From: Auanema rhodensis
Lineage: Eukaryota > Animalia > Nematoda
NCBI GenBank assembly: GCA_964057225.1
Contig: OZ059900.1
Coordinates: 19,964,001-20,028,000 of the forward strand
Direction: 5' to 3'
Length of the DNA: 64,000 bases
Shown: piece after piece, positions 10,260 to 61,000 of the stretch
How positions within the stretch are numbered: the stretch's first letter is position 1
Layout: each line of letters starts with the position of its first letter
Notes under the pieces: generated by a model
The model's input: only the letters and a program-made list of their open reading frames with translations
Databases searched by the model: none
Told to the model about the DNA's origin: nothing
Translations under genes and position numbers: made by a program

Positions 10260-12994
10260 TTGAGCTAGGTTTCATTGACATTGCATGAGTTTGAACACAT
10301 GAAATCGTAAGTCAAAACCTTGTTTACAGCGAAATTTCCAAAAACTGGTTTTCCAGCATAATAAAATATTTCTCATGGGAAATACTGTGTTTTTGTATTT
10401 TTCTAGTGTTCAGCATGTAAAATGCTTCATTTTAGTATGTAACACGCTGAAATTCGTTGCATTTGACGACTCATATGAACAAAAATCGATTTAATCAATA
10501 TTAGCCATAAGGGGCGTGCCCTCAAAATATGCTAATTTCCTTAATTTTCTAACCCCTGTTTTTTTGTCGTGAAAGTGGAACTAGACGTTGTACGAACAAT
10601 TTTGAGCTAGGTTTCATTGACATTGCATGAGTTTGAACACATGAAATCGTAAGTCAAAACCTTGTTTACAGCGAAATTTCCAAAAACTGGTTTTCCAGCA
10701 TAATAAAATATTTCTCATGGGAAATACTGTGTTTTTGTATTTTTCTAGTGTTCAGCATGTAAAATGCTTCATTTTAGTATGTAACACGCTGAAATTCGTT
10801 GCATTTGACGACTCATATGAACAAAAATCGATTTAATCAATATTAGCCATAAGGGGCGTGCCCTCAGAATATGCTAATTTCCTTAATTTTCTAACCCCTG
10901 TTTTTTTGTCGTGAAAGTGTAACTAGACGTTGTACGAACAATTTTGAGCTAGGTTTCGTTGACATTGCATGAGTTTGAACACATGAAATCGTAAGTCAAA
11001 ACCTTGTTTACAGCGAAATTTCCAAAAACTGGTTTTCCAGCATAATAAAATATTTCTCATGGGAAATACTGTGTTTTTGTATTTTTTCAGTGTTCAGCAT
11101 GTAAAATGCTTCATTTTAGTATGTAACACGCTGAAATTCGTTGCATTTGACGACTCATATGAACAAAAATCGATTTAATCAATATTAGCCATAAGGGGCG
11201 TGCCCTCAGAATATGCTAGTTTCCTTAATTTTCTAACCCCTGTTTTTTTGTCGTGAAAGTGGAACTAGACGTTGTACGAATAATTTTGAGCTAGGTTTCA
11301 TTGACATTGCATGAGTTTGAACACATGAAATCGTAAGTCAAAACCTTGTTTACAGCGAAATTTCCAAAAACTGGTTTTCCAGCATAATAAAATATTTCTC
11401 ATGGGAAATACTGTGTTTTTGTATTTTTCTAGTGTTCAGCATGTAAAATGCTTCATTTTAGTATGTAACACGCTGAAATTCGTTGCATTTGACGACTCAT
11501 ATGAACAAAAATCGATTTAATCAATATTAGCCATAAGGGGCGTGCCCTCAGAATATGCTAATTTCCTTAATTTTCTAACCCCTGTTTTTTTGTCGTGAAA
11601 GTGGAACTGGACGTTGTACGAACAATTTTGAGCTAGGTTTCATTGACATTGCATGAGTTTGAACACATGAAATCGTAAGTCAAAACCTTGTTTACAGCGA
11701 AATTTCCAAAAACTGGTTTTCCAGCATAATAAAATATTTCTCATGGGAAATACTGTGTTTTTGTATTTTTCTAGTGTTCAGCATGTAAAATGCTTTATTT
11801 TAGTATGTAACACGCTGAAATTCGTTGCATTTGACGACTCATATGAACAAAAATCGATTTAATCAATATTAGCCATAAGGGGCGTGCCCTCAGAATATGC
11901 TAATTTCCCTAATTTTCTAACCCCTGTTTTTTTGTCGTGAAAGTGGAACTAGACGTTGTACGAACAATTTTGAGCTAGGTTTCATTGACATTGCATGAGT
12001 TTGAACACATGAAATCGTAAGTCAAAACCTTGTTTACAGCGAAATTTCCAAAAACTGGTTTTCCAGCATAATAAAATATTTCTCATGGGAAATACTGTGT
12101 TTTTGTATTTTTCTAGTGTTCAGCATGTAAAATGCTTCATTTTAGTATGTAACACGCTGAAATTCGTTGCATTTGACGACTCATATGAACAAAAATCGAT
12201 TTAATCAATATTAGCCATAAGGGGCGTGCCCTCAAAATATGCTAATTTCCTTAATTTTCTAACCCCTGTTTTTTTGTCGTGAAAGTGGAACTAGACGTTG
12301 TACGAACAATTTTGAGCTAGGTTTCATTGACATTGCATGAGTTTGAACACATGAAATCGTAAGTCAAACCTTGTTTACAGCGAAATTTCCAAAAACTGGT
12401 TTTCCAGCATAATAAAATATTTCTCATGGGAAATACTGTGTTTTTGTATTTTTCTAGTGTTCAGCATGTAAAATGCTTCATTTTAGTATGTAACACGCTG
12501 AAATTCGTTGCATTTGACGACTCATATGAACAAAAATCGATTTAATCAATATTAGCCATAAGGGGCGTGCCCTCAGAATATGCTAATTTCCTTAATTTTC
12601 TAACCCCTGTTTTTTTGTCGTGAAAGTGGAACTAGACGTTGTACGAACAATTTTGAGCTAGGTTTCGTTGACATTGCATGAGTTTGAACACATGAAATCG
12701 TAAGTCAAAACCTTGTTTACAGCGAAATTTCCAAAAACTGGTTTTCCAGCATAATAAAATATTTCTCATGGGAAATACTGTGTTTTTGTATTTTTCCAGT
12801 GTTCAGCATGTAAAATGCTTCATTTTAGTATGTAACACGCTGAAATTCGTTGCATTTGACGACTCATATGAACAAAAATCGATTTAATCAATATTAGCCA
12901 TAAGGGGCGTGCCCTCAGAATATGCTAGTTTCCTTAATTTTCTAACCCCTGTTTTTTTGTCGTGAAAGTGGAACTAGACGTTGTACGAATAATT
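10260..12994 (+). repeat. 5-monomer higher-order repeat (~1710 bp), partial second copy
   Basis: CTCAAAAT at 10525/12235, GCTAGT at 11219/12928 and GAATAA at 11281/12990. The offset is 1710, or 1709 after a 1-bp deletion near 12366. Confidence 0.85.
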
Positions 12995-15730
12995 TTGAGC
13001 AAGGTTTCATTGACATTGCATGAGTTTGAACACATGAAATCGTAAGTCAAAACCTTGTTTACAGCGAAATTTCCAAAAACTGGTTTTCCAGCATAATAAA
13101 ATATTTCTCATGGGAAATACTGTGTTTTTGTATTTTTCTAGTGTTCAGCATGTAAAATGCTTCATTTTAGTATGTAACACGCTGAAATTCGTTGCATTTG
13201 ACGACTCATATGAACAAAAATCGATTTAATCAATATTAGCCATAAGGGGCGTGCCCTCAGAATATGCTAATTTCCTTAATTTTCTAACCCCTGTTTTTTT
13301 GTCGTGAAAGTGGAACTAGACGTTGTACGAACAATTTTGAGCTAGGTTTCGTTGACATTGCATGAGTTTGAACACATGAAATCGTAAGTCAAAACCTTGT
13401 TTACAGCGAAATTTCCAAAAACTGGTTTTCCAGCATAATAAAATATTTCTCATGGGAAATACTGTGTTTTTGTATTTTTCCAGTGTTCAGCATGTAAAAT
13501 GCTTCATTTTAGTATGTAACACGCTGAAATTCGTTGCATTTGACGACTCATATGAACAAAAATCGATTTAATCAATATTAGCCATAAGGGGCGTGCCCTC
13601 AGAATATGCTAATTTCCCTAATTTTCTAACCCCTGTTTTTTTGTCGTGAAAGTGGAACTAGACGTTGTACGAACAATTTTGAGCTAGGTTTCATTGACAT
13701 TGCATGAGTTTGAACACATGAAATCGTAAGTCAAAACCTTGTTTACAGCGAAATTTCCAAAAACTGGTTTTCCAGCATAATAAAATATTTCTCATGGGAA
13801 ATACTGTGTTTTTGTATTTTTCTAGTGTTCAGCATGTAAAATGCTTCATTTTAGTATGTAACACGCTGAAATTCGTTGCATTTGACGACTCATATGAACA
13901 AAAATCGATTTAATCAATATTAGCCATAAGGGGCGTGCCCTCAGAATATGCTAATTTCCCTAATTTTCTAACCCCTGTTTTTTTGTCGTGAAAGTGGAAC
14001 TAGACGTTGTACGAACAATTTTGAGCTAGGTTTCATTGACATTGCATGAGTTTGAACACATGAAATCGTAAGTCAAAACCTTGTTTACAGCGAAATTTCC
14101 AAAAACTGGTTTTCCAGCATAATAAAATATTTCTCATGGGAAATACTGTGTTTTTGTATTTTTCTAGTGTTCAGCATGTAAAATGCTCCATTTTAGTATG
14201 TAACACGCTGAAATTCGTTGCATTTGACGACTCATATGAACAAAAATCGATTTAATCAATATTAGCCATAAGGGGCGTGCCCTCAGAATATGCTAATTTC
14301 CTTAATTTTCTAACCCCTGTTTTTTTGTCGTGAAAGTGGAACTAGACGTTGTACGAACAATTTTGAGCTAGGTTTCGTTGACATTGCATGAGTTTGAACA
14401 CATGAAATCGTAAGTCAAAACCTTGTTTACAGCGAATTTTCCAAAAACTGGTTTTCCAGCATAATAAAATATTTCTCATGGGAAATACTGTGTTTTTGTA
14501 TTTTTCCAGTGTTCAGCATGTAAAATGCTTCATTTTAGTATGTAACACGCTAAAATTCGTTGCATTTGGCGACTCATATGAACAAAAATCGATTTAATCA
14601 ATATTAGCCATAAGGGGCGTGCCCTCAGAATATGCTAATTTCCCTAATTTTTTAACCCCTGTTTTTTTGTCGTGAAAGTGGAACTAGACGTTGTACGAAC
14701 AATTTTGAGCTAGGTTTCATTGACATTGCATGAGTTTGAACACATGAAATCGTAAGTCAAAACCTTGTTTACAGCGAAATTTCCAAAAACTGGTTTTCCA
14801 GCATAATAAAATATTTCTCATGGGAAATACTGTGTTTTTGTATTTTTCTAGTGTTCAGCATGTAAAATGCTTCATTTTAGTATGTAACACGCTGAAATTC
14901 GTTGCATTTGACGACTCATATGAACAAAAATCGATTTAATCAATATTAGCCATAAGGGGCGTGCCCTCAGAGTATGCTAATTTCCTTAATTTTCTAACCC
15001 CTGTTTTTTTGTCGTGAAAGTGGAACTAGACGTTGTACGAACAATTTTGAGCTAAGTTTCATTGACATTGCATGAGTTTGAACACATGAAATCGTAAGTC
15101 AAAACCTTGTTTACAGCGAAATTTCCAAAAACTGGTTTTCCAGCATAATAAAATATTTCTCATGGGAAATACTGTGTTTTTGTATTTTTCTAGTGTTCAG
15201 CATGTAAAATGCTTCATTTTAGTGTGTAACACGCTGAAATTCGTTGCATTTGACGACTCATATGAACAAAAATCGATTTAATCAATATTAGCCATAAGGG
15301 GCGTGCCCTCAGAATATGCTAATTTCCTTAATTTTCTAACCCCTGTTTTTTTGTCGTGAAAGTGGAACTAGACGTTGTACGAACAATTTTGAGCTAAGTT
15401 TCATTGACATTGCATGAGTTTGAACACATGAAATCGTAAGTCAAAACCTTGTTTACAGCGAAATTTCCAAAAACTGGTTTTCCAGCATAATAAAATATTT
15501 CTCATGGGAAATACTGTGTTTTTGTATTTTTCTAGTGTTCAGCATGTAAAATGCTTCTTTTTAGTATGTAACACGCTGAAATTCGTCCCCTTTGACGACT
15601 CATATGAACAAAAATCGATTTAATCAATATTAGCCATAAGGGGCGTGCCCTCAGAATATGCTAATTTCCTTAATTTTCTAACCCCTGTTTTTTTGTCGTG
15701 AAAGTGGAACTAGACGTTGTACGAACAATT

Positions 15731-16030
15731 TTGAGCTAGGTTTCATTGACATTGCATGAGTTTGAACACATGAAATCGTAAGTCAAAACCTTGTTTACAG
15801 CGAAATTTCCAAAAACTGGTTTTCCAGCATAATAAAATATTTCTCATGGGAAATACTGTGTTTTTGTATTTTTCTAGTGTTCAGCATGTAAAATGCTTCA
15901 TTTTAGTATGTAACACGCTGAAATTCGTTGCATTTGACGACTCATAGCCCTCAGAGTATGCTAATTTCCTTAATTTTCTAACCCCTGTTTTTTTGTCGTG
16001 AAAGTGGAACTGGACGTTGTACGAACAATT
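15731..16030 (+). repeat. Shortened 300-bp monomer (42-bp deletion of monomer positions 217-258)
   Basis: GACTCATA|GCCCTCAGAGTATG at 15946/15947. The next monomer starts 300 bp later. Confidence 0.95.
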
Positions 16031-17740
16031 TTGAGCTAGGTTTCATTGACATTGCATGAGTTTGAACACATGAAATCGTAAGTCAAAACCTTGTTTACAG
16101 CGAAATTTCCAAAAACTGGTTTTCCAGCATAATAAAATATTTCTCATGGGAAATACTGTGTTTTCGTATTTTTCTAGTGTTCAGCTTGTAAAATGCTTCA
16201 TTTTAGTATGTAACACGCTGAAATTCGTTGCATTTGACGACTCATATGAACAAAAATGGATTTAATCAATATTAGCCATAAGGGGCGTGCCCTCAGAATA
16301 TGCTAATTTCCCTAATTTTCTAACCCCTGTTTTTTTGTCGTGAAAGTGGAACTAGACGTTGTAGGAACAATTTTGAGCTAGGTTTCATTGACATTGCATG
16401 AGTTTGAACACATGAAATCGTAAGTCAAAACCTTGTTTACAGCGAAATTTCCAAAAACTGGTTTTCCAGCATAATAAAATATTTCTCATGGGAAATACTG
16501 TGTTTTTGTATTTTTCTAGTGTTCAGCATGTAAAATGCTTCATTTTAGTATGTAACACGCTGAAATTCGTTGCATTTTACGACTCATATGAACAAAAATC
16601 GATTTAATCAATATTAGCCATAAGGGGCTTGCCCTCAGAATATGCTAATTTCCTTAATTTTCTAACCCCTGTTTTTTTGTCGTGAAAGTGGAACTAGACG
16701 TTGTACGAACAATTTTGAGCTAGGTTTCATTGACATTGCATGAGTTTGAACACATGAAATCGTAAGTCAAAACCTTGTTTACAGCGAAATTTCCAAAAAC
16801 TGGTTTTCCAGCATAATAAAATATTTCTCATGGGAAATACTGTGTTTCTGTATTTTTCTAGTGTTCAGCATGTAAAATGCTTCATTTTAGTATGTAACAC
16901 GCTGAAGTTCGTTGCATTTGACGACTCATATGAACAAAAATCGATTTAATCAATATTAGCCATAAGGGGCGTGCCCTCAGAATATGCTATTTTCCTTAAT
17001 TTTCTAACCCCTGTTTTTTTGTCGTGAAAGTGGAACTAGACGTTGTACGAACAATTTTGAGCTAGGTTTCATTGACATTGCATGAGTTTGAACACATGAA
17101 ATCGTAAGTCAAAACCTTGTTTACAGCGAAATTTCCAAAAACTGGTTTTCCAGCATAATAAAATATTTCTCATGGGAAATACTGTGTTTTTGTATTTTTC
17201 TAGTGTTCAGCATGTAAAATGCTTCATTTTAGTATGTAACACGCTGAAATTCGTTGCATTTGACGACTCATATGAACAAAAATCGATTTAATCAATATTA
17301 GCCATAAGGGGCGTGCCCTCAGAATATGCTAATTTCCTTAATTTTCTAACCCCTGTTTTTTTGTCGTGAAAGTGGAACTAGACGTTGTACGAACAATTTT
17401 GAGCTAGGTTTCGTTGACATTGCATGAGTTTGAACACATGAAATCGTAAGTCAAAACCTTGTTTACAGCGAAATTTCCAAAAACTGGTTTTCCAGCATAA
17501 TAAAATATTTCTCATGGGAAATACTGTGTTTTTGTATTTTTCCAGTGTTCAGCATGTAAAATGCTTCATTTTAGTATGTAACACGCTGAAATTCGTTGCA
17601 TTTGGCGACTCATATGAACAAAAATCGATTTAATCAATATTAGCCATAAGGGGCGTGCCCTCAGAATATGCTAATTTCCCTAATTTTCTAACCCCTGTTT
17701 TTTTGTCGTGAAAGTGGAACTAGACGTTGTACGAACAATT

Positions 17741-18040
17741 TTGAGCTAGGTTTCATTGACATTGCATGAGTTTGAACACATGAAATCGTAAGTCAAAACC
17801 TTGTTTACAGCGAAATTTCCAAAAACTGGTTTTCCAGCATAATAAAATATTTCTCATGGGAAATACTGTGTTTTTGTATTTTTCTAGTGTTCAGCATGTA
17901 AAATGCTTCATTTTAGTATGTAACACGCTGAAATTCGTTGCATTTGACGACTCATAGCCCTCAGAGTATGCTAATTTCCTTAATTTTCTAACCCCTGTTT
18001 TTTTGTCGTGAAAGTGGAACTAGACGTTGTACGAACAATT
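17741..18040 (+). repeat. Second 300-bp monomer with the identical 42-bp deletion
   Basis: GACTCATA|GCCCTCAGAGTATG at 17956/17957, with the same linked AGAGT variant. Confidence 0.95.
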
Positions 18041-20434
18041 TTGAGCTAAGTTTCATTGACATTGCATGAGTTTGAACACATGAAATCGTAAGTCAAAACC
18101 TTGTTTACAGCGAAATTTCCAAAAACTGGTTTTCCAGCATAATAAAATATTTCTCATGGGAAATACTGTGTTTTTGTATTTTTCTAGTGTTCAGCATGTA
18201 AAATGCTTCATTTTAGTGTGTAACACGCTGAAATTCGTTGCATTTGACGACTCATATGAACAAAAATCGATTTAATCAATATTAGCCATAAGGGGCGTGC
18301 CCTCAGAATATGCTATTTTCCTTAATTTTCTAACCCCTGTTTTTTTGTCGTGAAAGTGGAACTAGACGTTGTACGAACAATTTTGAGCTAAGTTTCATTG
18401 ACATTGCATGAGTTTGAACACATGAAATCGTAAGTCAAAACCTTGTTTACAGCGAAATTTCCAAAAACTGGTTTTCCAGCATAATAAAATATTTCTCATG
18501 GGAAATACTGTGTTTTTGTATTTTTCTAGTGTTCAGCATGTAAAATGCTTCATTTTAGTATGTAACACGCTGAAATTCGTTGCATTTGACGACTCATATG
18601 AACAAAAATCGATTTAATCAATATTAGCCATAAGGGGCGTGCCCTCAGAATATGCTAATTTCCTTAATTTTCTAACCCCTGTTTTTTTGTCGTGAAAGTG
18701 GAACTAGACGTTGTACGAACAATTTTGAGCTAGGTTTCGTTGACATTGCATGAGTTTGAACACATGAAATCGTAAGTCAAAACCTTGTTTACAGCGAAAT
18801 TTCCAAAAACTGGTTTTCCAGCATAATAAAATATTTCTCATGGGAAATACTGTGTTTTTGTATTTTTCCAGTGTTCAGCATGTAAAATGCTTCATTTTAG
18901 TATGTAACACGCTGAAATTCGTTGCATTTGGCGACTCATATGAACAAAAATCGATTTAATCAATATTAGCCATAAGGGGCGTGCCCTCAGAATATGCTAA
19001 TTTCCCTAATTTTCTAACCCCTGTTTTTTTGTCGTGAAAGTGGAACTAGACGTTGTACGAACAATTTTGAGCTAGGTTTCATTGACATTGCATGAGTTTG
19101 AACACATGAAATCGTAAGTCAAAACCTTGTTTACAGCGAAATTTCCAAAAACTGGTTTTCCAGCATAATAAAATATTTCTCATGGGAAATACTGTGTTTT
19201 TGTATTTTTCTAGTGTTCAGCATGTAAAATGCTTCATTTTAGTGTGTAACACGCTGTAATTCGTTGCATTTGACGACTCATATGAACAAAAATCGATTTA
19301 ATCAATATTAGCCATAAGGGGCGTGCCCTCAGAATATGGTAATTTCCTTAATTTTCTAACCCCTGTTTTTTTGTCGTGAAAGTGGAACTAGACGTTGTAC
19401 AAACAATTTTGAGCTAGGTTTCATTGACATTGCATGAGTTTGAACACATGAAATCGTAAGTCAAAACCTTGTTTACAGCGAAATTTCCAAAAACTGGTTT
19501 TCCAGCATAATAAAATATTTCTCATGGGAAATACTGTGTTTTTGTATTTTTCTAGTGTTCAGCATGTAAAATGTTTCGTTTTAGTATGTAACACGCTGAA
19601 ATTCGTTGCATTTGACGACTCATATGAACAAAAATCGATTTAATCAATATTAGCCATAAGGGGCGTGCCCTCAGAGTATGCTAATTTCCTTAATTTTCTA
19701 ACCCCTGTTTTTTTGTCGTGAAAGTGGAACTAGACGTTGTACGAACAATTTTGAGCTAAGTTTCATTGACATTGCATGAGTTTGAACACATGAAATCGTA
19801 AGTCAAAACCTTGTTTACAGCGAAATTTCCAAAAACTGGTTTTCCAGCATAATAAAATATTTCTCATGGGAAATACTGTGTTTTTGTATTTTTCTAGTGT
19901 TCAGCATGTAAAATGCTTCATTTTAGTGTGTAACACGCTGAAATTCGTTGCATTTGACGACTCATATGAACAAAAATCGATTTAATCAATATTAGCCATA
20001 AGGGGCGTGCCCTCAGAATATGCTATTTTCCTTAATTTTCTAACCCCTGTTTTTTTGTCGTGAAAGTGGAACTAGACGTTGTACGAACAATTTTGAGCTA
20101 AGTTTCATTGACATTGCATGAGTTTGAACACATGAAATCGTAAGTCAAAACCTTGTTTACAGCGAAATTTCCAAAAACTGGTTTTCCAGCATAATAAAAT
20201 ATTTCTCATGGGAAATACTGTGTTTTTGTATTTTTCTAGTGTTCAGCATGTAAAATGCTTCTTTTTAGTATGTAACACGCTGAAATTCGTCCCCTTTGAC
20301 GACTCATATGAACAAAAATCGATTTAATCAATATTAGCCATAAGGGGCGTGCCCTCAGAATATGCTAATTTCCTTAATTTTCTAACCCCTGTTTTTTTGT
20401 CGTGAAAGTGGAACTAGACGTTGTACGAACAATT

Positions 20435-23400
20435 TTGAGCTAGGTTTCATTGACATTGCATGAGTTTGAACACATGAAATCGTAAGTCAAAACCTTGTTT
20501 ACAGCGAAATTTCCAAAAACTGGTTTTCCAGCATAATAAAATATTTCTCATGGGAAATACTGTGTTTTGTATTTTTCTAGTGTTCAGCTTGTAAAATGCT
20601 TCATTTTAGTATGTAACACGCTGAAATTCGTTGCATTTGACGACTCATATGAACAAAAATGGATTTAATCAATATTAGCCATAAGGGGCGTGCCCTCAGA
20701 ATATGCTAATTTCCCTAATTTTCTAACCCCTGTTTTTTTGTCGTGAAAGTGGAACTAGACGTTGTAGGAACAATTTTGAGCTAGGTTTCATTGACATTGC
20801 ATGAGTTTGAACACATGAAATCGTAAGTCAAAACCTTGTTTACAGCGAAATTTCCAAAAACTGGTTTTCCAGCATAATAAAATATTTCTCATGGGAAATA
20901 CTGTGTTTTTGTATTTTTCTAGTGTTCAGCATGTAAAATGCTTCATTTTAGTATGTAACACGCTGAAATTCGTTGCATTTTACGACTCATATGAACAAAA
21001 ATCGATTTAATCAATATTAGCCATAAGGGGCGTGCCCTCAGAATATGCTAATTTCCCTAATTTTCTAACCCCTGTTTTTTTGTCGTGAAAGTGGAACTAG
21101 ACGTTGTACGAACAATTTTGAGCTAGGTTTCATTGACATTGCATGAGTTTGAACACATGAAATCGTAAGTCAAAACCTTGTTTACAGCGAAATTTCCAAA
21201 AACTGGTTTTCCAGCATAATAAAATATTTCTCATGGGAAATACTGTGTTTCTGTATTTTTCTAGTGTTCAGCATGTAAAATGCTTCATTTTAGTATGTAA
21301 CACGCTGAAGTTCGTTGCATTTGACGACTCATATGAACAAAAATCGATTTAATCAATATTAGCCATAAGGGGCGTGCCCTCAGAATATGCTATTTTCCTT
21401 AATTTTCTAACCCCTGTTTTTTTGTCGTGAAAGTGGAACTAGACGTTGTACGAACAATTTTGAGCTAGGTTTCATTGACATTGCATGAGTTTGAACACAT
21501 GAAATCGTAAGTCAAAACCTTGTTTACAGCGAAATTTCCAAAAACTGGTTTTCCAGCATAATAAAATATTTCTCATGGGAAATACTGTGTTTTTGTATTT
21601 TTCTAGTGTTCAGCATGTAAAATGCTTCATTTTAGTATGTAACACGCTGAAATTCGTTGCATTTGACGACTCATATGAACAAAAATCGATTTAATCAATA
21701 TTAGCCATAAGGGGCGTGCCCTCAGAATATGCTAATTTCCTTAATTTTCTAACCCCTGTTTTTTTGTCGTGAAAGTGGAACTAGACGTTGTACGAACAAT
21801 TTTGAGCTAGGTTTCATTGACATTGCATGAGTTTGAACACATGAAATCGTAAGTCAAAACCTTGTTTACAGCGAAATTTCCAAAAACTGGTTTTCCAGCA
21901 TAATAAAATATTTCTCATGGGAAATACTGTGTTTTTGTATTTTTCTAGTGTTCAGCATGTAAAATGCTTCATTTTAGTATGTAACACGCTGAAATTCGTT
22001 GCATTTGACGACTCATATGAACAAAAATCGATTTAATCAATATTAGCCATAAGGGGCGTGCCCTCAGAATATGCTAATTTCCCTAATTTTCTAACCCCTG
22101 TTTTTTTGTCGTGAAAGTGGAACTAGACGTTGTAGGAACAATTTTGAGCTAGGTTTCATTGACATTGCATGAGTTTGAACACATGAAATCGTAAGTCAAA
22201 ACCTTGTTTACAGCGAAATTTCCAAAAACTGGTTTTCCAGCATAATAAAATATTTCTCATGGGAAATACTGTGTTTTTGTATTTTTCTAGTGTTCAGCAT
22301 GTAAAATGCTTCATTTTAGTATGTAACACGCTGAAATTCGTTGCATTTTACGACTCATATGAACAAAAATCGATTTAATCAATATTAGCCATAAGGGGCG
22401 TGCCCTCAGAATATGCTAATTTCCCTAATTTTCTAACCCCTGTTTTTTTGTCGTGAAAGTGGAACTAGACGTTGTACGAACAATTTTGAGCTAGGTTTCA
22501 TTGACATTGCATGAGTTTGAACACATGAAATCGTAAGTCAAAACCTTGTTTACAGCGAAATTTCCAAAAACTGGTTTTCCAGCATAATAAAATATTTCTC
22601 ATGGGAAATACTGTGTTTCTGTATTTTTCTAGTGTTCAGCATGTAAAATGCTTCATTTTAGTATGTAACACGCTGAAGTTCGTTGCATTTGACGACTCAT
22701 ATGAACAAAAATCGATTTAATCAATATTAGCCATAAGGGGCGTGCCCTCAGAATATGCTATTTTCCTTAATTTTCTAACCCCTGTTTTTTTGTCGTGAAA
22801 GTGGAACTAGACGTTGTACGAACAATTTTGAGCTAGGTTTCATTGACATTGCATGAGTTTGAACACATGAAATCGTAAGTCAAAACCTTGTTTACAGCGA
22901 AATTTCCAAAAACTGGTTTTCCAGCATAATAAAATATTTCTCATGGGAAATACTGTGTTTTTGTATTTTTCTAGTGTTCAGCATGTAAAATGCTTCATTT
23001 TAGTATGTAACACGCTGAAATTCGTTGCATTTGACGACTCATATGAACAAAAATCGATTTAATCAATATTAGCCATAAGGGGCGTGCCCTCAGAATATGC
23101 TAATTTCCTTAATTTTCTAACCCCTGTTTTTTTGTCGTGAAAGTGGAACTAGACGTTGTACGAACAATTTTGAGCTAGGTTTCATTGACATTGCATGAGT
23201 TTGAACACATGAAATCGTAAGTCAAAACCTTGTTTACAGCGAAATTTCCAAAAACTGGTTTTCCAGCATAATAAAATATTTCTCATGGGAAATACTGTGT
23301 TTTTGTATTTTTCTAGTGTTCAGCATGTAAAATGCTTCATTTTAGTATGTAACACGCTGAAATTCGTTGCATTTGACGACTCATATGAACAAAAATCGAT

Positions 23401-39280: not shown

Positions 39281-39310
39281 ATGAAATCGTAAAACGAATT
39301 CCAGCGTGTT
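39281..39310. other. Orientation-switch (inversion) junction between 39292 and 39293
   Basis: ...ATGAAATCGTAA|AACGAATTCCAGCGTGTTAC...: the + monomer ends at position 51 and the - monomer starts at position 199. There is no insertion and no overlap. A private T>C substitution lies at 39301. Confidence 0.97.
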
Positions 39311-46499: not shown

Positions 46500-49400
46500 A
46501 AAATGAAGCATTTTACATGCTGAACACTAGAAAAACACAAAAACACAGTATTTCCCATGAGAAATATTTTATTATGCTGGAAAACCAGTTTTTGGAAATT
46601 TCGCTGTAAACAAGGTTTTGACTTACGATTTCATGTGTTCAAACTCATGCAATGTCAATGAAACCTAGCTCAAAATTGTTCGTACAACGTCTAGTTCCAC
46701 TTTCACGACAAAAAAACAGGGGTTAGAAAATTAAGGAAAATAGCATATTCTGAGGGCACGCCCCTTATGGCTAATATTGATTAAATTGATTTTTGTTCAT
46801 ATGAGTCGTCAAATGCAACGAATTTCAGCGTGTTACATACTAAAATGAAGCATTTTACATGCTGAACACTAGAAAAATACAAAAACACAGTATTTCCCAT
46901 GAGAAATATTTTATTATGCTGGAAAACCAGTTTTTGGAAATTTCGCTGTAAACAAGGTTTTGACTTACGATTTCATGTGTTCAAACTCATGCAATGTCAA
47001 TGAAACCTAGCTCAAAATTGTTCGTACAACGTCTAGTTCCACTTTCACGACAAAAAAACAGGGGTTAGAAAATTAAGGAAATTAGCATATTCTGAGGGCA
47101 CGCCCCTTATGGCTAATATTGATTAAATCGATTTTTGTTCATATGAGTCGTAAAATGCAACGAATTTCAGCGTGTTACATACTAAAATGAAGCATTTTAC
47201 ATGCTGAACACTAGAAAAATACAAAAACACAGTATTTCCCATGAGAAATATTTTATTATGCTGGAAAACCAGTTTTTGGAAATTTCGCTGTAAACAAGGT
47301 TTTGACTTACGATTTCATGTGTTCAAACTCATGCAATGTCAATGAAACCTAGCTCAAAATTGTTCGTACAACGTCTAGTTCCACTTTCACGACAAAAAAA
47401 CAGGGGTTAGAAAATTAGGGAAATTAGCATATTCTGAGGGCACGCCCCTTATGGCTAATATTGATTAAATCCATTTTTGTTCATATGAGTCGTCAAATGC
47501 AACGAATTTCAGCGTGTTACATACTAAAATGAAGCATTTTACAAGCTGAACACTAGAAAAATACAAAACACAGTATTTCCCATGAGAAATATTTTATTAT
47601 GCTGGAAAACCAGTTTTTGGAAATTTCGCTGTAAACAAGGTTTTGACTTACGATTTCATGTGTTCAAACTCATGCAATGTCAATGAAACCTAGCTCAAAA
47701 TTGTTCGTACAACGTCTAGTTCCACTTTCACGACAAAAAAACAGGGGTTAGAAAATTAAGGAAATTAGCATATTCTGAGGGCACGCCCCTTATGGCTAAT
47801 ATTGATTAAATCGATTTTTGTTCATATGAGTCGTCAAAGGGGACGAATTTCAGCGTGTTACATACTAAAAAGAAGCATTTTACATGCTGAGCACTAGAAA
47901 AATACAAAAACACAGTATTTCCCATGAGAAATATTTTATTATGCTGGAAAACCAGTTTTTGGAAATTTCGCTGTAAACAAGGTTTTGACTTACGATTTCA
48001 TGTGTTCAAACTCATGCAATGTCAATGAAGCTTAGCTCAAAATTGTTCGTACAACGTCTAGTTCCACTTTCACGACAAAAAAACAGGGGTTAGAAAATTA
48101 AGGAAATTAGCATATTCTGAGGGCACGCCCCTTATGGCTAATATTGATTAAATCGATTTTTGTTCATATGAGTCGTCAAAGGGGACGAATTTCAGCGTGT
48201 TACATACTAAAAAGAAGCATTTTACATGCTGAGCACTAGAAAAATACAAAAACACAGTATTTCCCATGAGAAATATTTTATTATGCTGGAAAACCAGTTT
48301 TTGGAAATTTCGCTGTAAACAAGGTTTTGACTTACGATTTCATGTGTTCAAACTCATGCAATGTCAATGAAGCTTAGCTCAAAATTGTTCGTACAACGTC
48401 TAGTTCCACTTTCACGACAAAAAAACAGGGGTTAGAAAATTAAGGAAATTAGCATATTCTGAGGGCACGCCCCTTATGGCTAATATTGATTAAATCGATT
48501 TTTGTTCATATGAGTCGTCAAATGCAACGAATTTCAGCGTGTTACATACTAAAATGAAGCATTTTACATGCTGAACACTAGAAAAATACAAAAACACAGT
48601 ATTTCCCATGAGAAATATTTTATTATGCTGGAAAACCAGTTTTTGGAAATTTCGCTGTAAACAAGGTTTTGACTTACGATTTCATGTGTTCAAACTCATG
48701 CAATGTCAATGAAACCTAGCTCAAAATTGTTCGTACAACGTCTAGTTCCACTTTCACGACAAAAAAACAGGGGTTAGAAAATTAAGGAAATTAGCATATT
48801 CTGAGGGCACGCCCCTTATGGCTAATATTGATTAAATCGATTTTTGTTCATATGAGTCGTCAAATGCAACGAATTTCAGCGTGTTACATACTAAAATGAA
48901 GCATTTTACATGCTGAACACTAGAAAAACACAAAAACACAGTATTTCCCATGAGAAATATTTTATTATGCTGGAAAACCAGTTTTTGGAAATTTCGCTGT
49001 AAACAAGGTTTTGACTTACGATTTCATGTGTTCAAACTCATGCAATGTCAATGAAACCTAGCTCAAAATTGTTCGTACAACGTCTAGTTCCACTTTCACG
49101 ACAAAAAAACAGGGGTTAGAAAATTAAGGAAAATAGCATACTCTGAGGGCACGCCCCTTATGGCTAATATTGATTAAATCGATTTTTGTTCATATGAGTC
49201 GTCAAATGCAACGAATTTCAGCGTGTTACATACTAAAATGAAGCATTTTACATGCTGAACACTAGAAAAATACAAAAACACAGTATTTCCCATGAGAAAT
49301 ATTTTATTATGCTGGAAAACCAGTTTTTGGAAATTTCGCTGTAAACAAGGTTTTGACTTACGATTTCATGTGTTCAAACTCATGCAATGTCAATGAAACC

Positions 49401-52400
49401 TAGCTCAAAATTGTTCGTACAACGTCTAGTTCCACTTTCACGACAAAAAAACAGGGGTTAGAAAATTAAGGAAATTAGCATATTCTGAGGGCACGCCCCT
49501 TATGGCTAATATTGATTAAATCGATTTTTGTTCATATGAGTCGTCAAATGCAACGAATTTCAGCGTGTTACATACTAAAATGAAGCATTTTACATGCTAA
49601 ACACTAGAAAAACACAAAAACACAGTATTTCCCATGAGAAATATTTTATTATGCTGGAAAACCAGTTTTTGGAAATTTCGCTGTAAACAAGGTTTTGACT
49701 TACGATTTCATGTGTTCAAACTCATGCAATGTCAATGAAACCTAGCTCAAAATTGTTCGTACAACGTCTAGTTCCACTTTCACGACAAAAAAACAGGGGT
49801 TAGAAAATTAAGGAAAATAGCATATTCTGAGGGCACGCCCCTTATGGCTAATATTGATTAAATCGATTTTTGTTCATATGAGTCGTCAAATGCAACGAAT
49901 TTCAGCGTGTTACATACTAAAATGAAGCATTTTACATGCTGAACACTAGAAAAATACAAAAACACAGTATTTCCCATGAGAAATATTTTATTATGCTGGA
50001 AAACCAGTTTTTGGAAATTTCGCTGTAAACAAGGTTTTGACTTACGATTTCATGTGTTCAAACTCATGCAATGTCAATGAAACCTAGCTCAAAATTGTTC
50101 GTACAACGTCTAGTTCCACTTTCACGACAAAAAAACAGGGGTTAGAAAATTAAGGAAATTAGCATATTCTGAGGGCACGCCCCTTATGGCTAATATTGAT
50201 TAAATCGATTTTTGTTCATATGAGTCGTAAAATGCAACGAATTTCAGCGTGTTACATACTAAAATGAAGCATTTTACATGCTGAACACTAGAAAAATACA
50301 AAAACACAGTATTTCCCATGAGAAATATTTTATTATGCTGGAAAACCAGTTTTTGGAAATTTCGCTGTAAACAAGGTTTTGACTTACGATTTCATGTGTT
50401 CAAACTCATGCAATGTCAATGAAACCTAGCTCAAAATTGTTCGTACAACGTCTAGTTCCACTTTCACGACAAAAAAACAGGGGTTAGAAAATTAGGGAAA
50501 TTAGCATATTCTGAGGGCACGCCCCTTATGGCTAATATTGATTAAATCCATTTTTGTTCATATGAGTCGTCAAATGCAACGAATTTCAGCGTGTTACATA
50601 CTAAAATGAAGCATTTTACAAGCTGAACACTAGAAAAATACAAAACACAGTATTTCCCATGAGAAATATTTTATTATGCTGGAAAACCAGTTTTTGGAAA
50701 TTTCGCTGTAAACAAGGTTTTGACTTACGATTTCATGTGTTCAAACTCATGCAATGTCAATGAAACCTAGCTCAAAATTGTTCGTACAACGTCTAGTTCC
50801 ACTTTCACGACAAAAAAACAGGGGTTAGAAAATTAAGGAAATTAGCATATTCTGAGGGCACGCCCCTTATGGCTAATATTGATTAAATCGATTTTTGTTC
50901 ATATGAGTCGTAAAATGCAACGAATTTCAGCGTGTTACATACTAAAATGAAGCATTTTACATGCTGAACACTAGAAAAACACAAAAACACAGTATTTCCC
51001 ATGAGAAATATTTTATTATGCTGGAAAACCAGTTTTTGGAAATTTCGCTGTAAACAAGGTTTTGACTTACGATTTCATGTGTTCAAACTCATGCAATGTC
51101 AATGAAACCTAGCTCAAAATTGTTCGTACAACGTCTAGTTCCACTTTCACGACAAAAAAACAGGGGTTAGAAAATTAAGGAAAATAGCATATTCTGAGGG
51201 CACGCCCCTTATGGCTAATATTGATTAAATCGATTTTTGTTCATATGAGTCGTCAAATGCAACGAATTTCAGCGTGTTACATACTAAAATGAAGCATTTT
51301 ACATGCTGAACACTAGAAAAATACAAAAACACAGTATTTCCCATGAGAAATATTTTATTATGCTGGAAAACCAGTTTTTGGAAATTTCGCTGTAAACAAG
51401 GTTTTGACTTACGATTTCATGTGTTCAAACTCATGCAATGTCAATGAAACCTAGCTCAAAATTGTTCGTACAACGTCTAGTTCCACTTTCACGACAAAAA
51501 AACAGGGGTTAGAAAATTAAGGAAATTAGCATATTCTGAGGGCACGCCCCTTATGGCTAATATTGATTAAATCGATTTTTGTTCATATGAGTCGTAAAAT
51601 GCAACGAATTTCAGCGTGTTACATACTAAAATGAAGCATTTTACATGCTGAACACTAGAAAAATACAAAAACACAGTATTTCCCATGAGAAATATTTTAT
51701 TATGCTGGAAAACCAGTTTTTGGAAATTTCGCTGTAAACAAGGTTTTGACTTACGATTTCATGTGTTCAAACTCATGCAATGTCAATGAAACCTAGCTCA
51801 AAATTGTTCGTACAACGTCTAGTTCCACTTTCACGACAAAAAAACAGGGGTTAGAAAATTAGGGAAATTAGCATATTCTGAGGGCACGCCCCTTATGGCT
51901 AATATTGATTAAATCCATTTTTGTTCATATGAGTCGTCAAATGCAACGAATTTCAGCGTGTTACATACTAAAATGAAGCATTTTACATGCTGAACACTAG
52001 AAAAATACAAAAACACAGTATTTCCCATGAGAAATATTTTATTATGCTGGAAAACCAGTTTTTGGAAATTTCGCTGTAAACAAGGTTTTGACTTACGATT
52101 TCATGTGTTCAAACTCATGCAATGTCAATGAAACCTAGCTCAAAATTGTTCGTACAACGTCTAGTTCCACTTTCACGACAAAAAAACAGGGGTTAGAAAA
52201 TTAAGGAAATTAGCATATTCTGAGGGCACGCCCCTTATGGCTAATATTGATTAAATCGATTTTTGTTCATATGAGTCGTAAAATGCAACGAATTTCAGCG
52301 TGTTACATACTAAAATGAAGCATTTTACATGCTGAACACTAGAAAAATACAAAAACACAGTATTTCCCATGAGAAATATTTTATTATGCTGGAAAACCAG

Positions 52401-55400
52401 TTTTTGGAAATTTCGCTGTAAACAAGGTTTTGACTTACGATTTCATGTGTTCAAACTCATGCAATGTCAATGAAACCTAGCTCAAAATTGTTCGTACAAC
52501 GTCTAGTTCCATTTTCACGACAAAAAAACAGGGGTTAGAAAATTAGGGAAATTAGCATATTCTGAGGGCACGCCCCTTATGGCTAATATTGATTAAATCG
52601 ATTTTTGTTCATATGAGTCGTCAAATGCAACGAATTTCAGCGTGTTACATACTAAAATGAAGCATTTTACATGCTGAACACTAGAAAAATACAAAAACAC
52701 AGTATTTCCCATGAGAAATATTTTATTATGCTGGAAAACCAGTTTTTGGAAATTTCGCTGTAAACAAGGTTTTGACTTACGATTTCATGTGTTCAAACTC
52801 ATGCAATGTCAATGAAACCTAGCTCAAAATTGTTCGTACAACGTCTAGTTCCACTTTCACGACAAAAAAACAGGGGTTAGAAAATTAAGGAAATTAGCAT
52901 ATTCTGAGGGCACGCCCCTTATGGCTAATATTGATTAAATCGATTTTTGTTCATATGAGTCGTAAAATGCAACGAATTTCAGCGTGTTACATACTAAAAT
53001 GAAGCATTTTACATGCTGAACACTAGAAAAATACAAAAACACAGTATTTCCCATGAGAAATATTTTATTATGCTGGAAAACCAGTTTTTGGAAATTTCGC
53101 TGTAAACAAGGTTTTGACTTACGATTTCATGTGTTCAAACTCATGCAATGTCAATGAAACCTAGCTCAAAATTGTTCGTACAACGTCTAGTTCCACTTTC
53201 ACGACAAAAAAACAGGGGTTAGAAAATTAGGGAAATTAGCATATTCTGAGGGCACGCCCCTTATGGCTAATATTGATTAAATCCATTTTTGTTCATATGA
53301 GTCGTCAAATGCAACGAATTTCAGCGTGTTACATACTAAAATGAAGCATTTTACAAGCTGAACACTAGAAAAATACAAAACACAGTATTTCCCATGAGAA
53401 ATATTTTATTATGCTGGAAAACCAGTTTTTGGAAATTTCGCTGTAAACAAGGTTTTGACTTACGATTTCATGTGTTCAAACTCATGCAATGTCAATGAAA
53501 CCTAGCTCAAAATTGTTCGTACAACGTCTAGTTCCACTTTCACGACAAAAAAACAGGGGTTAGAAAATTAAGGAAATTAGCATATTCTGAGGGCACGCCC
53601 CTTATGGCTAATATTGATTAAATCGATTTTTGTTCATATGAGTCGTCAAAGGGGACGAATTTCAGCGTGTTACATACTAAAAAGAAGCATTTTACATGCT
53701 GAGCACTAGAAAAATACAAAAACACAGTATTTCCCATGAGAAATATTTTATTATGCTGGAAAACCAGTTTTTGGAAATTTCGCTGTAAACAAGGTTTTGA
53801 CTTACGATTTCATGTGTTCAAACTCATGCAATGTCAATGAAGCTTAGCTCAAAATTGTTCGTACAACGTCTAGTTCCACTTTCACGACAAAAAAACAGGG
53901 GTTAGAAAATTAAGGAAATTAGCATATTCTGAGGGCACGCCCCTTATGGCTAATATTGATTAAATCGATTTTTGTTCATATGAGTCGTCAAATGCAACGA
54001 ATTTCAGCGTGTTACATACTAAAATGAAGCATTTTACATGCTGAACACTAGAAAAATACAAAAACACAGTATTTCCCATGAGAAATATTTTATTATGCTG
54101 GAAAACCAGTTTTTGGAAATTTCGCTGTAAACAAGGTTTTGACTTACGATTTCATGTGTTCAAACTCATGCAATGTCAATGAAACCTAGCTCAAAATTGT
54201 TCGTACAACGTCTAGTTCCACTTTCACGACAAAAAAACAGGGGTTAGAAAATTAAGGAAATTAGCATATTCTGAGGGCACGCCCCTTATGGCTAATATTG
54301 ATTAAATCGATTTTTGTTCATATGAGTCGTCAAAGGGGACGAATTTCAGCGTGTTACATACTAAAAAGAAGCATTTTACATGCTGAGCACTAGAAAAATA
54401 CAAAAACACAGTATTTCCCATGAGAAATATTTTATTATGCTGGAAAACCAGTTTTTGGAAATTTCGCTGTAAACAAGGTTTTGACTTACGATTTCATGTG
54501 TTCAAACTCATGCAATGTCAATGAAGCTTAGCTCAAAATTGTTCGTACAACGTCTAGTTCCACTTTCACGACAAAAAAACAGGGGTTAGAAAATTAAGGA
54601 AATTAGCATATTCTGAGGGCACGCCCCTTATGGCTAATATTGATTAAATCGATTTTTGTTCATATGAGTCGTCAAATGCAACGAATTTCAGCGTGTTACA
54701 TACTAAAATGAAGCATTTTACATGCTGAACACTAGAAAAATACAAAAACACAGTATTTCCCATGAGAAATATTTTATTATGCTGGAAAACCAGTTTTTGG
54801 AAATTTCGCTGTAAACAAGGTTTTGACTTACGATTTCATGTGTTCAAACTCATGCAATGTCAATGAAACTTAGCTCAAAATTGTTCGTACAACGTCTAGT
54901 TCCACTTTCACGACAAAAAAACAGGGGTTAGAAAATTAAGGAAATTAGCATACTCTGAGGGCACGCCCCTTATGGCTAATATTGATTAAATCGATTTTTG
55001 TTCATATGAGTCGTCAAATGCAACGAATTTCAGCGTGTTACATACTAAAATGAAGCATTTTACATGCTGAACACTAGAAAAATACAAAAACACAGTATTT
55101 CCCATGAGAAATATTTTATTATGCTGGAAAACCAGTTTTTGGAAATTTCGCTGTAAACAAGGTTTTGACTTACGATTTCATGTGTTCAAACTCATGCAAT
55201 GTCAATGAAACCTAGCTCAAAATTGTTCGTACAACGTCTAGTTCCACTTTCACGACAAAAAAACAGGGGTTAGAAAATTAAGGAAATTAGCATATTCTGA
55301 GGGCACGCCCCTTATGGCTAATATTGATTAAATCGATTTTTGTTCATATGAGTCGTCAAATGCAATGAATTTCAGCGTGTTACATACTAAAATGAAGCAT

Positions 55401-58000
55401 TTTACATGCTGAACACTAGAAAAACACAAAAACACAGTATTTCCCATGAGAAATATTTTATTATGCTGGAAAACCAGTTTTTGGAAATTTCGCTGTAAAC
55501 AAGGTTTTGACTTACGATTTCATGTGTTCAAACTCATGCAATGTCAATGAAACCTAGCTCAAAATTGTTCGTACAACGTCTAGTTCCACTTTCACGACAA
55601 AAAAACAGGGGTTAGAAAATTAAGGAAAATAGCATATTCTGAGGGCACGCCCCTTATGGCTAATATTGATTAAATCGATTTTTGTTCATATGAGTCGTCA
55701 AATGCAACGAATTTCAGCGTGTTACATACTAAAATGAAGCATTTTACATGCTGAACACTAGAAAAATACAAAAACACAGTATTTCCCATGAGAAATATTT
55801 TATTATGCTGGAAAACCAGTTTTTGGAAATTTCGCTGTAAACAAGGTTTTGACTTACGATTTCATGTGTTCAAACTCATGCAATGTCAATGAAACCTAGC
55901 TCAAAATTGTTCGTACAACGTCTAGTTCCACTTTCACGACAAAAAAACAGGGGTTAGAAAATTAAGGAAATTAGCATATTCTGAGGGCACGCCCCTTATG
56001 GCTAATATTGATTAAATCGATTTTTGTTCATATGAGTCGTAAAATGCAACGAATTTCAGCGTGTTACATACTAAAATGAAGCATTTTACATGCTGAACAC
56101 TAGAAAAATACAAAAACACAGTATTTCCCATGAGAAATATTTTATTATGCTGGAAAACCAGTTTTTGGAAATTTCGCTGTAAACAAGGTTTTGACTTACG
56201 ATTTCATGTGTTCAAACTCATGCAATGTCAATGAAACCTAGCTCAAAATTGTTCGTACAACGTCTAGTTCCACTTTCACGACAAAAAAACAGGGGTTAGA
56301 AAATTAGGGAAATTAGCATATTCTGAGGGCACGCCCCTTATGGCTAATATTGATTAAATCCATTTTTGTTCATATGAGTCGTCAAATGCAACGAATTTCA
56401 GCGTGTTACATACTAAAATGAAGCATTTTACAAGCTGAACACTAGAAAAATACAAAACACAGTATTTCCCATGAGAAATATTTTATTATGCTGGAAAACC
56501 AGTTTTTGGAAATTTCGCTGTAAACAAGGTTTTGACTTACGATTTCATGTGTTCAAACTCATGCAATGTCAATGAAACCTAGCTCAAAATTGTTCGTACA
56601 ACGTCTAGTTCCACTTTCACGACAAAAAAACAGGGGTTAGAAAATTAAGGAAATTAGCATATTCTGAGGGCACGCCCCTTATGGCTAATATTGATTAAAT
56701 CGATTTTTGTTCATATGAGTCGTCAAATGCAACGAATTTCAGCGTGTTACATACTAAAATGAAGCATTTTACATGCTGAACACTAGAAAAATACAAAAAC
56801 ACAGTATTTCCCATGAGAAATATTTTATTATGCTGGAAAACCAGTTTTTGGAAATTTCGCTGTAAACAAGGTTTTGACTTACGATTTCATGTGTTCAAAC
56901 TCATGCAATGTCAATGAAACCTAGCTCAAAATTGTTCGTACAACGTCTAGTTCCACTTTCACGACAAAAAAACAGGGGTTAGAAAATTAAGGAAATTAGC
57001 ATATTCTGAGGGCACGCCCCTTATGGCTAATATTGATTAAATCGATTTTTGTTCATATGAGTCGTAAAATGCAACGAATTTCAGCGTGTTACATACTAAA
57101 ATGAAGCATTTTACATGCTGAACACTAGAAAAATACAAAAACACAGTATTTCCCATGAGAAATATTTTATTATGCTGGAAAACCAGTTTTTGGAAATTTC
57201 GCTGTAAACAAGGTTTTGACTTACGATTTCATGTGTTCAAACTCATGCAATGTCAATGAAACCTAGCTCAAAATTGTTCGTACAACGTCTAGTTCCACTT
57301 TCACGACAAAAAAACAGGGGTTAGAAAATTAGGGAAATTAGCATATTCTGAGGGCACGCCCCTTATGGCTAATATTGATTAAATCCATTTTTGTTCATAT
57401 GAGTCGTCAAATGCAACGAATTTCAGCGTGTTACATACTAAAATGAAGCATTTTACAAGCTGAACACTAGAAAAATACAAAACACAGTATTTCCCATGAG
57501 AAATATTTTATTATGCTGGAAAACCAGTTTTTGGAAATTTCGCTGTAAACAAGGTTTTGACTTACGATTTCATGTGTTCAAACTCATGCAATGTCAATGA
57601 AACCTAGCTCAAAATTGTTCGTACAACGTCTAGTTCCACTTTCACGACAAAAAAACAGGGGTTAGAAAATTAAGGAAATTAGCATATTCTGAGGGCACGC
57701 CCCTTATGGCTAATATTGATTAAATCGATTTTTGTTCATATGAGTCGTCAAAGGGGACGAATTTCAGCGTGTTACATACTAAAAAGAAGCATTTTACATG
57801 CTGAACACTAGAAAAATACAAAAACACAGTATTTCCCATGAGAAATATTTTATTATGCTGGAAAACCAGTTTTTGGAAATTTCGCTGTAAACAAGGTTTT
57901 GACTTACGATTTCATGTGTTCAAACTCATGCAATGTCAATGAAGCTTAGCTCAAAATTGTTCGTACAACGTCTAGTTCCACTTTCACGACAAAAAAACAG
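46500..58000 (-). repeat. Imperfect 17-monomer (5812 bp) HOR with internal 9-mer and shorter subrepeats
   Basis: GGGGAC at 47839/53651, GTAAAA at 47152/52964 and ~50229/~56041, AACAC at ~49613/~55425, all 5812 bp apart (17x342-2). Boundaries are approximate. Confidence 0.75.
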
Positions 58001-61000
58001 GGGTTAGAAAATTAAGGAAATTAGCATATTCTGAGGGCACGCCCCTTATGGCTAATATTGATTAAATCGATTTTTGTTCATATGAGTCGTCAAATGCAAC
58101 GAATTTCAGCGTGTTACATACTAAAATGAAGCATTTTACATGCTGAACACTAGAAAAATACAAAAACACAGTATTTCCCATGAGAAATATTTTATTATGC
58201 TGGAAAACCAGTTTTTGGAAATTTCGCTGTAAACAAGGTTTTGACTTACGATTTCATGTGTTCAAACTCATGCAATGTCAATGAAACCTAGCTCAAAATT
58301 GTTCGTACAACGTCTAGTTCCACTTTCACGACAAAAAAACAGGGGTTAGAAAATTAGGGAAATTAGCATATTCTGAGGGCACGCCCCTTATGGCTAATAT
58401 TGATTAAATCGATTTTTGTTCATATGAGTCGCCAAATGCAACGAATTTCAGCGTGTTACATACTAAAATGAAGCATTTTACATGCTGAACACTGGAAAAA
58501 TACAAAAACACAGTATTTCCCATGAGAAATATTTTATTATGCTGGAAAACCAGTTTTTGGAAAATTCGCTGTAAACAAGGTTTTGACTTACGATTTCATG
58601 TGTTCAAACTCATGCAATGTCAACGAAACCTAGCTCAAAATTGTTCGTACAACGTCTAGTTCCACTTTCACGACAAAAAAACAGGGGTTAGAAAATTAAG
58701 GAAATTAGCATATTCTGAGGGCACGCCCCTTATGGCTAATATTGATTAAATCGATTTTTGTTCATATGAGTCGTCAAATGCAACGAATTTCAGCGTGTTA
58801 CATACTAAAATGGAGCATTTTACATGCTGAACACTAGAAAAATACAAAAACACAGTATTTCCCATGAGAAATATTTTATTATGCTGGAAAACCAGTTTTT
58901 GGAAATTTCGCTGTAAACAAGGTTTTGACTTACGATTTCATGTGTTCAAACTCATGCAATGTCAATGAAACCTAGCTCAAAATTGTTCGTACAACGTCTA
59001 GTTCCACTTTCACGACAAAAAAACAGGGGTTAGAAAATTAGGGAAATTAGCATATTCTGAGGGCACGCCCCTTATGGCTAATATTGATTAAATCGATTTT
59101 TGTTCATATGAGTCGTCAAATGCAACGAATTTCAGCGTGTTACATACTAAAATGAAGCATTTTACATGCTGAACACTAGAAAAATACAAAAACACAGTAT
59201 TTCCCATGAGAAATATTTTATTATGCTGGAAAACCAGTTTTTGGAAATTTCGCTGTAAACAAGGTTTTGACTTACGATTTCATGTGTTCAAACTCATGCA
59301 ATGTCAATGAAACCTAGCTCAAAATTGTTCGTACAACGTCTAGTTCCACTTTCACGACAAAAAAACAGGGGTTAGAAAATTAGGGAAATTAGCATATTCT
59401 GAGGGCACGCCCCTTATGGCTAATATTGATTAAATCGATTTTTGTTCATATGAGTCGTCAAATGCAACGAATTTCAGCGTGTTACATACTAAAATGAAGC
59501 ATTTTACATGCTGAACACTAGAAAAATACAAAAACACAGTATTTCCCATGAGAAATATTTTATTATGCTGGAAAACCAGTTTTTGGAAATTTCGCTGTAA
59601 ACAAGGTTTTGACTTACGATTTCATGTGTTCAAACTCATGCAATGTCAATGAAACCTAGCTCAAAATTATTCGTACAACGTCTAGTTCCACTTTCACGAC
59701 AAAAAAACAGGGGTTAGAAAATTAAGGAAACTAGCATATTCTGAGGGCACGCCCCTTATGGCTAATATTGATTAAATCGATTTTTGTTCATATGAGTCGT
59801 CAAATGCAACGAATTTCAGCGTGTTACATACTAAAATGAAGCATTTTACATGCTGAACACTGGAAAAATACAAAAACACAGTATTTCCCATGAGAAATAT
59901 TTTATTATGCTGGAAAACCAGTTTTTGGAAATTTCGCTGTAAACAAGGTTTTGACTTACGATTTCATGTGTTCAAACTCATGCAATGTCAACGAAACCTA
60001 GCTCAAAATTGTTCGTACAACGTCTAGTTCCACTTTCACGACAAAAAAACAGGGGTTAGAAAATTAAGGAAATTAGCATATTCTGAGGGCACGCCCCTTA
60101 TGGCTAATATTGATTAAATCGATTTTTGTTCATATGAGTCGTCAAATGCAACGAATTTCAGCGTGTTACATACTAAAATGAAGCATTTTACATGCTGAAC
60201 ACTAGAAAAATACAAAAACACAGTATTTCCCATGAGAAATATTTTATTATGCTGGAAAACCAGTTTTTGGAAAATTCGCTGTAAACAAGGTTTTGACTTA
60301 CGATTTCATGTGTTCAAACTCATGCAATGTCAACGAAACCTAGCTCAAAATTGTTCGTACAACGTCTAGTTCCACTTTCACGACAAAAAAACAGGGGTTA
60401 GAAAATTAGGGAAATTAGCATATTCTGAGGGCACGCCCCTTATGGCTAATATTGATTAAATCGATTTTTGTTCATATGAGTCGCCAAATGCAACGAATTT
60501 CAGCGTGTTACATACTAAAATGAAGCATTTTACATGCTGAACACTGGAAAAATACAAAAACACAGTATTTCCCATGAGAAAATTTTTATTATGCTGGAAA
60601 ACCAGTTTTTGGAAAATTCGCTGTAAACAAGGTTTTGACTTACGATTTCATGTGTTCAAACTCATGCAATGTCAACGAAACCTAGCTCAAAATTGTTCGT
60701 ACAACGTCTAGTTCCACTTTCACGACAAAAAAACAGGGGTTAGAAAATTAAGGAAATTAGCATATTCTGAGGGCACGCCCCTTATGGCTAATATTGATTA
60801 AATCGATTTTTGTTCATATGAGTCGTCAAATGCAACGAATTTCAGCGTGTTACATACTAAAATGGAGCATTTTACATGCTGAACACTAGAAAAATACACA
60901 AACACAGTATTTCCCATGAGAAATATTTTATTATGCTGGAAAACCAGTTTTTGGAAATTTCGCTGTAAACAAGGTTTTGACTTACGATTTCATGTGTTCA

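Follow-up and report, generated by a model that had tools for sequence, protein, structure and literature searches.

We have analysed a 64,000-nucleotide stretch of the nematode Auanema rhodensis (NCBI GenBank assembly GCA_964057225.1, contig OZ059900.1, positions 19,964,001 to 20,028,000 of the forward strand; hereafter the window), all of which is a single tandem satellite. The satellite lies in two neighbouring arms of opposite orientation, a left arm of 39.3 kb and a right arm of at least 24.7 kb, and a stretch of each arm carries the same rare variant monomers in the same order on opposite strands. This mirror order, noticed in a first-pass annotation made from the letters of the DNA, is confirmed here, and comparison of the monomers supports the two stretches being inverted copies of one ancestral segment of the array. 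We favour, at a probability of roughly 55%, a fold-back type event at or near the strand switch (39292/39293) that copied the segment in inverted orientation and was followed by divergence of the arms.

The repeat unit is 342 bp long with a GC content of 34%, and the monomers are 98-99% alike. Tandem Repeats Finder (TRF) places the 342-bp array at 1-39292 in plus orientation and, over 39293-64000, in reverse complement. The AT skew changes sign at about 39-40 kb, coinciding with the strand switch found by TRF, and no second strand switch is present within the window. Both arms were cut into monomers and each difference from the consensus was listed; left-arm monomers are denoted L and right-arm monomers R, the R numbering running from the end of the window towards the junction. 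The types referred to below are A (14G 144C 275G 337T, corresponding to CGTT+CCAG+CTAGT+GAAT in the first-pass annotation), B (14G 74T 144C 206G 281C), C (167C), D (8A 169T 198C 199C 201C), E (155T 227G 281C), F (205T) and G (a 275T monomer). The variant 281C is the CCCT of the first-pass annotation.

The core series in both arms is A, 281C, 281C, C, B, D, E, F, read from 12653 to 16714 on the left and from 60006 to 56930 on the right. The type A monomers that open it, L36 (12653) and R11 (60006), are identical, with four variants each, and 281C monomers then appear in both arms. Outwards the series extends by one more B monomer per arm (L28 and R9) and inwards by repeated D-E-F-G blocks, which recur three to five times per arm. 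Every variant combination named in the first-pass annotation was located in our monomer variant map at the position it had given in both arms, and variants of the 15-25 kb zone do populate 47-58 kb, as it had said.

The order of the monomers was compared by monomer-level local alignment weighted by variant rarity. The alignment pairs L28-L71 with R9-R40 at a score of 120.4, against 42.9 when the order of the right arm is reversed. Shuffling the right-arm monomers, a permutation that the first-pass annotation had proposed, gave a mean score of 55 and a maximum of 88, and none of 300 shuffles matched the observed value. When monomers were shuffled in blocks of five the observed score was again never reached (0/300), and in blocks of eight it was reached by two of 300 shuffles. 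The score of the reversed order lies below the shuffled scores.

The dot plot agrees with the alignment. The predicted rare-variant anti-diagonal is present, with sharing only between L28-L71 and R0-R56, in the mirror sense, apart from a few weak dots near the junction. All rare 25-mers common to both arms are on opposite strands, and the rank correlation of their positions is negative (-0.44 to -0.61). Within the window the A-C-B-D path is found once per arm. Additionally, of 43 variants of the left shared zone 20 are present in the right arm too, compared with 0 of the 20 from the left outer zone at 343-9917 (Fisher p=9e-5). Exact matches of at least 600 bp between the arms were rejected as evidence because they are mostly runs of consensus monomers and so uninformative; the variant-weighted alignment was used in their place. 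The features of the window are collected in Table 1.

Table 1. Arms, shared copies, zones and marker monomers of the satellite window
Feature	Position	Strand	Monomers	Remarks
Left arm	1..39292	+	113 full scored monomers, L0 at 343 to L112 at 38559	TRF, segmentation
Left arm end			one further full monomer at 38900, then a 51-bp partial	partial stops at consensus position 51
Strand-switch junction	39292..39293			plus-strand monomer position 51 joined to reverse-complement monomer position 199
Right arm	39293..64000	-	71 full monomers, R0 at 63768 to R70 at 39833	TRF, AT skew, segmentation
Right arm end			199-bp partial monomer	touches the junction
Left outer zone	343..9917	+	L0-L27	20 distinct variants, including 284G, 193G, 8T, 296T and 143A; 0 in right arm
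Left shared copy	9918..24878	+	L28-L71	variant-free monomer run extends the copy to 26930; order: B.. A (5-monomer private duplication) A. 281C 281C C B I H D (300-bp) E F G ... D E F G ... E F G
Left core block	12653..16714	+	L36-L47	order unique within left arm
Left inner zone	26931..39292	+	L78-L113	without mirror partner; private repeats: 65C/164T, 281C, 183T (6- and 15-monomer spacing), 272A/263T, three 281C+292C monomers
Right inner zone	39293..42569	-	R62-R71	without mirror partner; private 4-monomer higher-order repeat: 229T 296A 309A / 281C 292C / 102C 103T 279G / plain
Right shared copy	44280..60690	- (read downward from 60690)	R9-R56	variant-free run extends the copy to 42570; order, first half: B. 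A 281C 281C C B. D E F. E F G. I H D; second half (after I H D):. D E F ... E F G ... D D E F G ... 281C G
Right core block	56930..60006	-	R11-R19	left-core order repeated; unique within right arm
Direct copy in right arm	61033..63426	-	R1-R7	copy of junction-proximal R63-R69 (39834-42227), 62 monomers (21.2 kb) apart
Type C (167C)	left 14188; right 58813
Type B	left 14363; right 58638
Type D	left 15389; right 57954
Type E	left 16031; right 57612
Type F	left 16373; right 57271

The two copies have not stayed alike. Types shared by both arms carry variants that are fixed in one arm only: 10C is present in five of five right D monomers and none of two on the left, 333G in three of three left E monomers (0/5 on the right), 133C+192G in four of four left G monomers (0/7) and 281C in three of four left F monomers (0/8). 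The D-E-F-G blocks therefore multiplied independently once the arms had split. There are also private local duplications in each arm, repeats of 5, 6 and 15 monomers on the left and a 4-monomer repeat adjoining the junction on the right. Together these bear out the independent expansion and contraction after copying that the first-pass annotation had proposed. Across 18 matched monomer pairs, 26 of 6156 sites differ (0.42%), compared with 1.1% in random left-right pairs. The copy is an old one, yet clearly younger than the general diversity of the family.

Two monomers of 300 bp (15731-16030 and 17741-18040), separated by 2010 bp (six units), carry 267G and have in common a deletion of 42 bp (consensus 216-257). 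Such monomers are found in the left arm only; the 267G monomers of the right arm lack the deletion.

The right arm additionally holds a long-range direct copy, in which R1-R7 repeat R63-R69; two segments, of 1141 and 922 bp, match exactly. The monomers that bound R1-R7 look recombinant (R1, 14G 74T joined to 279G; R7, 229T joined to 281C), which suggests that the copy arose by unequal exchange or conversion. Judged by its variants this direct copy arose after the arms had split, because the left arm has none of its 107A 108T, 229T, 296A, 309A, 102C, 103T and 279G.

At the junction the inverted register of the arms begins only past an asymmetric centre of 148 bp (39293-39440), and the 4-monomer higher-order repeat of the right inner zone is interrupted by the junction. 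The monomers next to the junction are not mirror images of each other, as the first-pass annotation had remarked. We compared 301 bases around the junction with Logan short-read contigs from four runs, for which only a fraction of the contigs was listed. Read-contig depth drops about tenfold at the junction, and contigs that end at 39292 or 39293 carry on as normal monomer, which confirms the point at which the unit is interrupted. A joint reported as 'opposite strands' in all four runs was rejected as support for the junction, since it is an ordinary uninverted monomer.

The sequence around the join has some further features. Similar short motifs precede both breakpoints in the region 39283-39303, TGAAATCGTAA (consensus 40-50) and TGAAATTCGTT (consensus 188-198), and the join forms a small TCGT-AAA-ACGA hairpin in the same region. 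The partial monomer at the junction has 102C 103T at 39388-39389, where every contig of the short-read runs X4 and X11 and nearly all of run X9 (about 96-98% of depth) have the consensus letters; part of the depth of run X1 retains 102C 103T. These two variants may be strain-specific.

The symmetry between the arms is limited in extent. The first-pass annotation had described an inverted duplication of tens of kilobases, of which the inverted homologous copies stand; the informative homology, however, covers about 15-17 kb per arm rather than the full 47-kb span. The left outer zone, 9.6 kb in length, has no variants in common with the right arm and no partner in the window, and any partner of it would lie past base 64000 because the right arm is the shorter. 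Between the shared copies and the junction are the two inner zones, linked to each other solely by 292C and 165T. Monomers with 281C+292C do reappear right of the junction (33429, 34797 and 37533 on the left, 39833 and 41201 on the right), as had been reported, and we found another at 62400 that had been missed. Private variants are about as dense in the inner zones (0.66-0.89 per monomer) as in the other zones, and the inner zones could be descendants, of the same age, of variant-poor monomers that were later reshaped. One objection to a fold-back is thereby removed, although a fold-back is not proven by it.

The last scored monomers of the left arm, L111 (38217) and L112 (38559), which occupy 38217-38899, resemble a decayed D-E pair. 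L111 has 201C, and L112 has 155T, 281C and a 1-base deletion at 130 together with the private variants 165T, 296T and 304C. The closest true D-E pair is 14 kb off.

What is observed directly is inverted homology in the same order together with arm-specific amplification. From this we infer the fold-back step and a later remodelling of the centre. A satellite segment of at least 15-17 kb would have been copied in inverted orientation, the likeliest route being a fold-back near 39292/39293, that is, fusion of sister strands or sister chromatids or a replication template switch. The arms would then have diverged, each gaining private point variants; the I-H-D-E-F-G block would have been multiplied several times per arm through unequal exchange, and the centre of the palindrome would have been remodelled into two unrelated private repeat zones. 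In favour of a fold-back, one event is enough to account for the copy as well as the junction. Loss of the centre is known from large palindromes, and later remodelling could explain why symmetry is absent at the junction. Several results nevertheless weigh against it. The join is blunt, with 0 shared bases and no inverted microhomology to prime a fold-back. Symmetry stops short of the junction, leaving 12.4 kb of the left arm and 3.3 kb of the right arm unmatched, and matched monomers are 4-9 kb farther from the junction in the left arm than in the right, so the copies are offset and a true mirror about the junction does not hold. The 292C and 165T variants were considered as a proximal mirror and rejected, because the sharing between the inner zones is at chance level and no greater than that of the left inner zone with other right-arm windows. 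Additionally, among the contigs listed in the four runs none spans 39292/39293, although short-read contigs cannot show absence. The order of the monomers does not help here: on the opposite strand every inverted copy reads in the same order, however it arose, and mirror order alone is silent on mechanism.

The same order on the opposite strand is thus also predicted if the segment was first copied directly by large-scale unequal exchange and one of the copies was then flipped by an inversion with two breakpoints, one at 39292/39293 and the other outside the window. Such a course explains the unequal distances between copies and junction and the unrelated junction flanks naturally, and better than a fold-back does, and the blunt join, of an end-joining type, fits it. 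It is made realistic by the direct duplicate 21 kb apart in the right arm, which shows that long-range direct duplication occurs in this array. However, that duplicate is the sole one of its kind seen and postdates the split of the arms, the second breakpoint is not visible in 64 kb, and two rearrangements are needed where one suffices. We regard this course as possible but not the probable one. A fold-back at the junction and the inversion of one of a pair of direct copies cannot be distinguished from the window alone; both courses had been named in the first-pass annotation. A different kind of explanation is that the junction is an assembly artefact, in which a chimeric read or a wrong graph path joined two separate parts of the array, or two haplotypes of the one locus, head to head. 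Satellite arrays are prone to misassembly, no bridging contig was among those listed, the 'opposite strands' joint proved to be normal monomer, and a divergence of 0.42% with differences in monomer number is also compatible with two alleles. Nevertheless we consider an artefact quite unlikely. The arms are not identical and hence not the product of a simple fold-back read artefact; a join of the non-homologous positions 51 and 199 cannot come from an overlap-based misjoin; the junction-proximal variants of each side are absent from the entire other arm, unlike what a haplotype turn-around would give; and the missing bridge falls under the limit of short-read contigs given above. Finally, the matching order would be meaningless if a short higher-order block recurs throughout the family and the likeness arose by chance or convergence. 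The recurrence of the D-E-F-G block within each arm and the two 8-monomer block shuffles that reached the observed score are in keeping with this. In contrast, the four-variant A monomer and the A-C-B-D path occur once per arm, neither monomer shuffles nor 5-monomer block shuffles ever reach the score, the reversed order falls below the shuffles, and the left outer zone shares none of its 20 variants. Coincidence is therefore highly improbable, and a fold-back followed by divergence is the reading that we prefer.

The 342-bp monomer matched nothing in Rfam, and it contains neither a tRNA nor an open reading frame of at least 40 amino acids; the array therefore looks like non-coding satellite DNA of an ordinary type. 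A literature search that included nematode papers and consensus 22-24-mers did not find a 342-bp nematode satellite. Short-read runs under eight organism codes contain 28-81% of the words sampled from the junction region. The family seems to be common to several related species, or to samples containing them.

Strand switches in satellites have been described in other organisms. In Tribolium, switches of orientation produce macro-dyad symmetries, multi-kilobase inverted subarrays of up to 75 kb with unequal arms, and the inversion sites are conserved, present in thousands of copies and located in cassettes of major and minor satellite (PMC13081366, PMC12581902). These symmetries are stated to be known only from Tribolium (PMC13081366). 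The A. rhodensis window likewise has multi-kilobase inverted subarrays of one satellite inside an array, with unequal arms. Unlike Tribolium, however, it holds a single 342-bp family and no major/minor cassette with conserved transition zones, and its junction is a plain blunt join; nothing among the listed contigs indicates a high-copy inversion site. Fold-back inverted duplications and the palindromes of breakage-fusion-bridge cycles have been well studied in humans and yeast (PMC3907307, PMC7467729, PMC3834830). As in the classical cases, the window has inverted arms from one segment and an asymmetric central spacer, but in those the symmetry continues to a short spacer and the join often has short inverted homology, whereas here there are unmatched inner zones and no microhomology. 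In the complete human genome, BSat and HSat arrays contain mosaic inversions, and the short arms of acrocentric chromosomes hold symmetric inverted blocks of satellite (PMC9186530). The nematode array resembles these in its strand switch and inverted duplicated blocks within a long satellite array, although the family and the organism are different and the human cases were validated by several read types, while the junction described here is seen in the assembly only.

Taken by itself, the window shows an ordinary satellite rearrangement of a type already known. Its value lies in the order of the rare variants, which dates and orders events within an otherwise uniform satellite: here the inverted copy preceded the amplification of blocks private to each arm, and the long-range direct copy in the right arm came last. 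Should the junction prove real and switches of this kind be frequent in the genome, Tribolium would no longer be the only documented case of satellite macro-dyads, and the genome would provide fold-backs of differing ages in which the decay of large palindromes may be studied. It is conceivable, but rather doubtful, that the satellite arrays of this nematode are repeatedly built into macro-dyads by fold-backs, of which the window would be an old stage and the first case outside Tribolium, possibly tied to chromosome breakage and healing.

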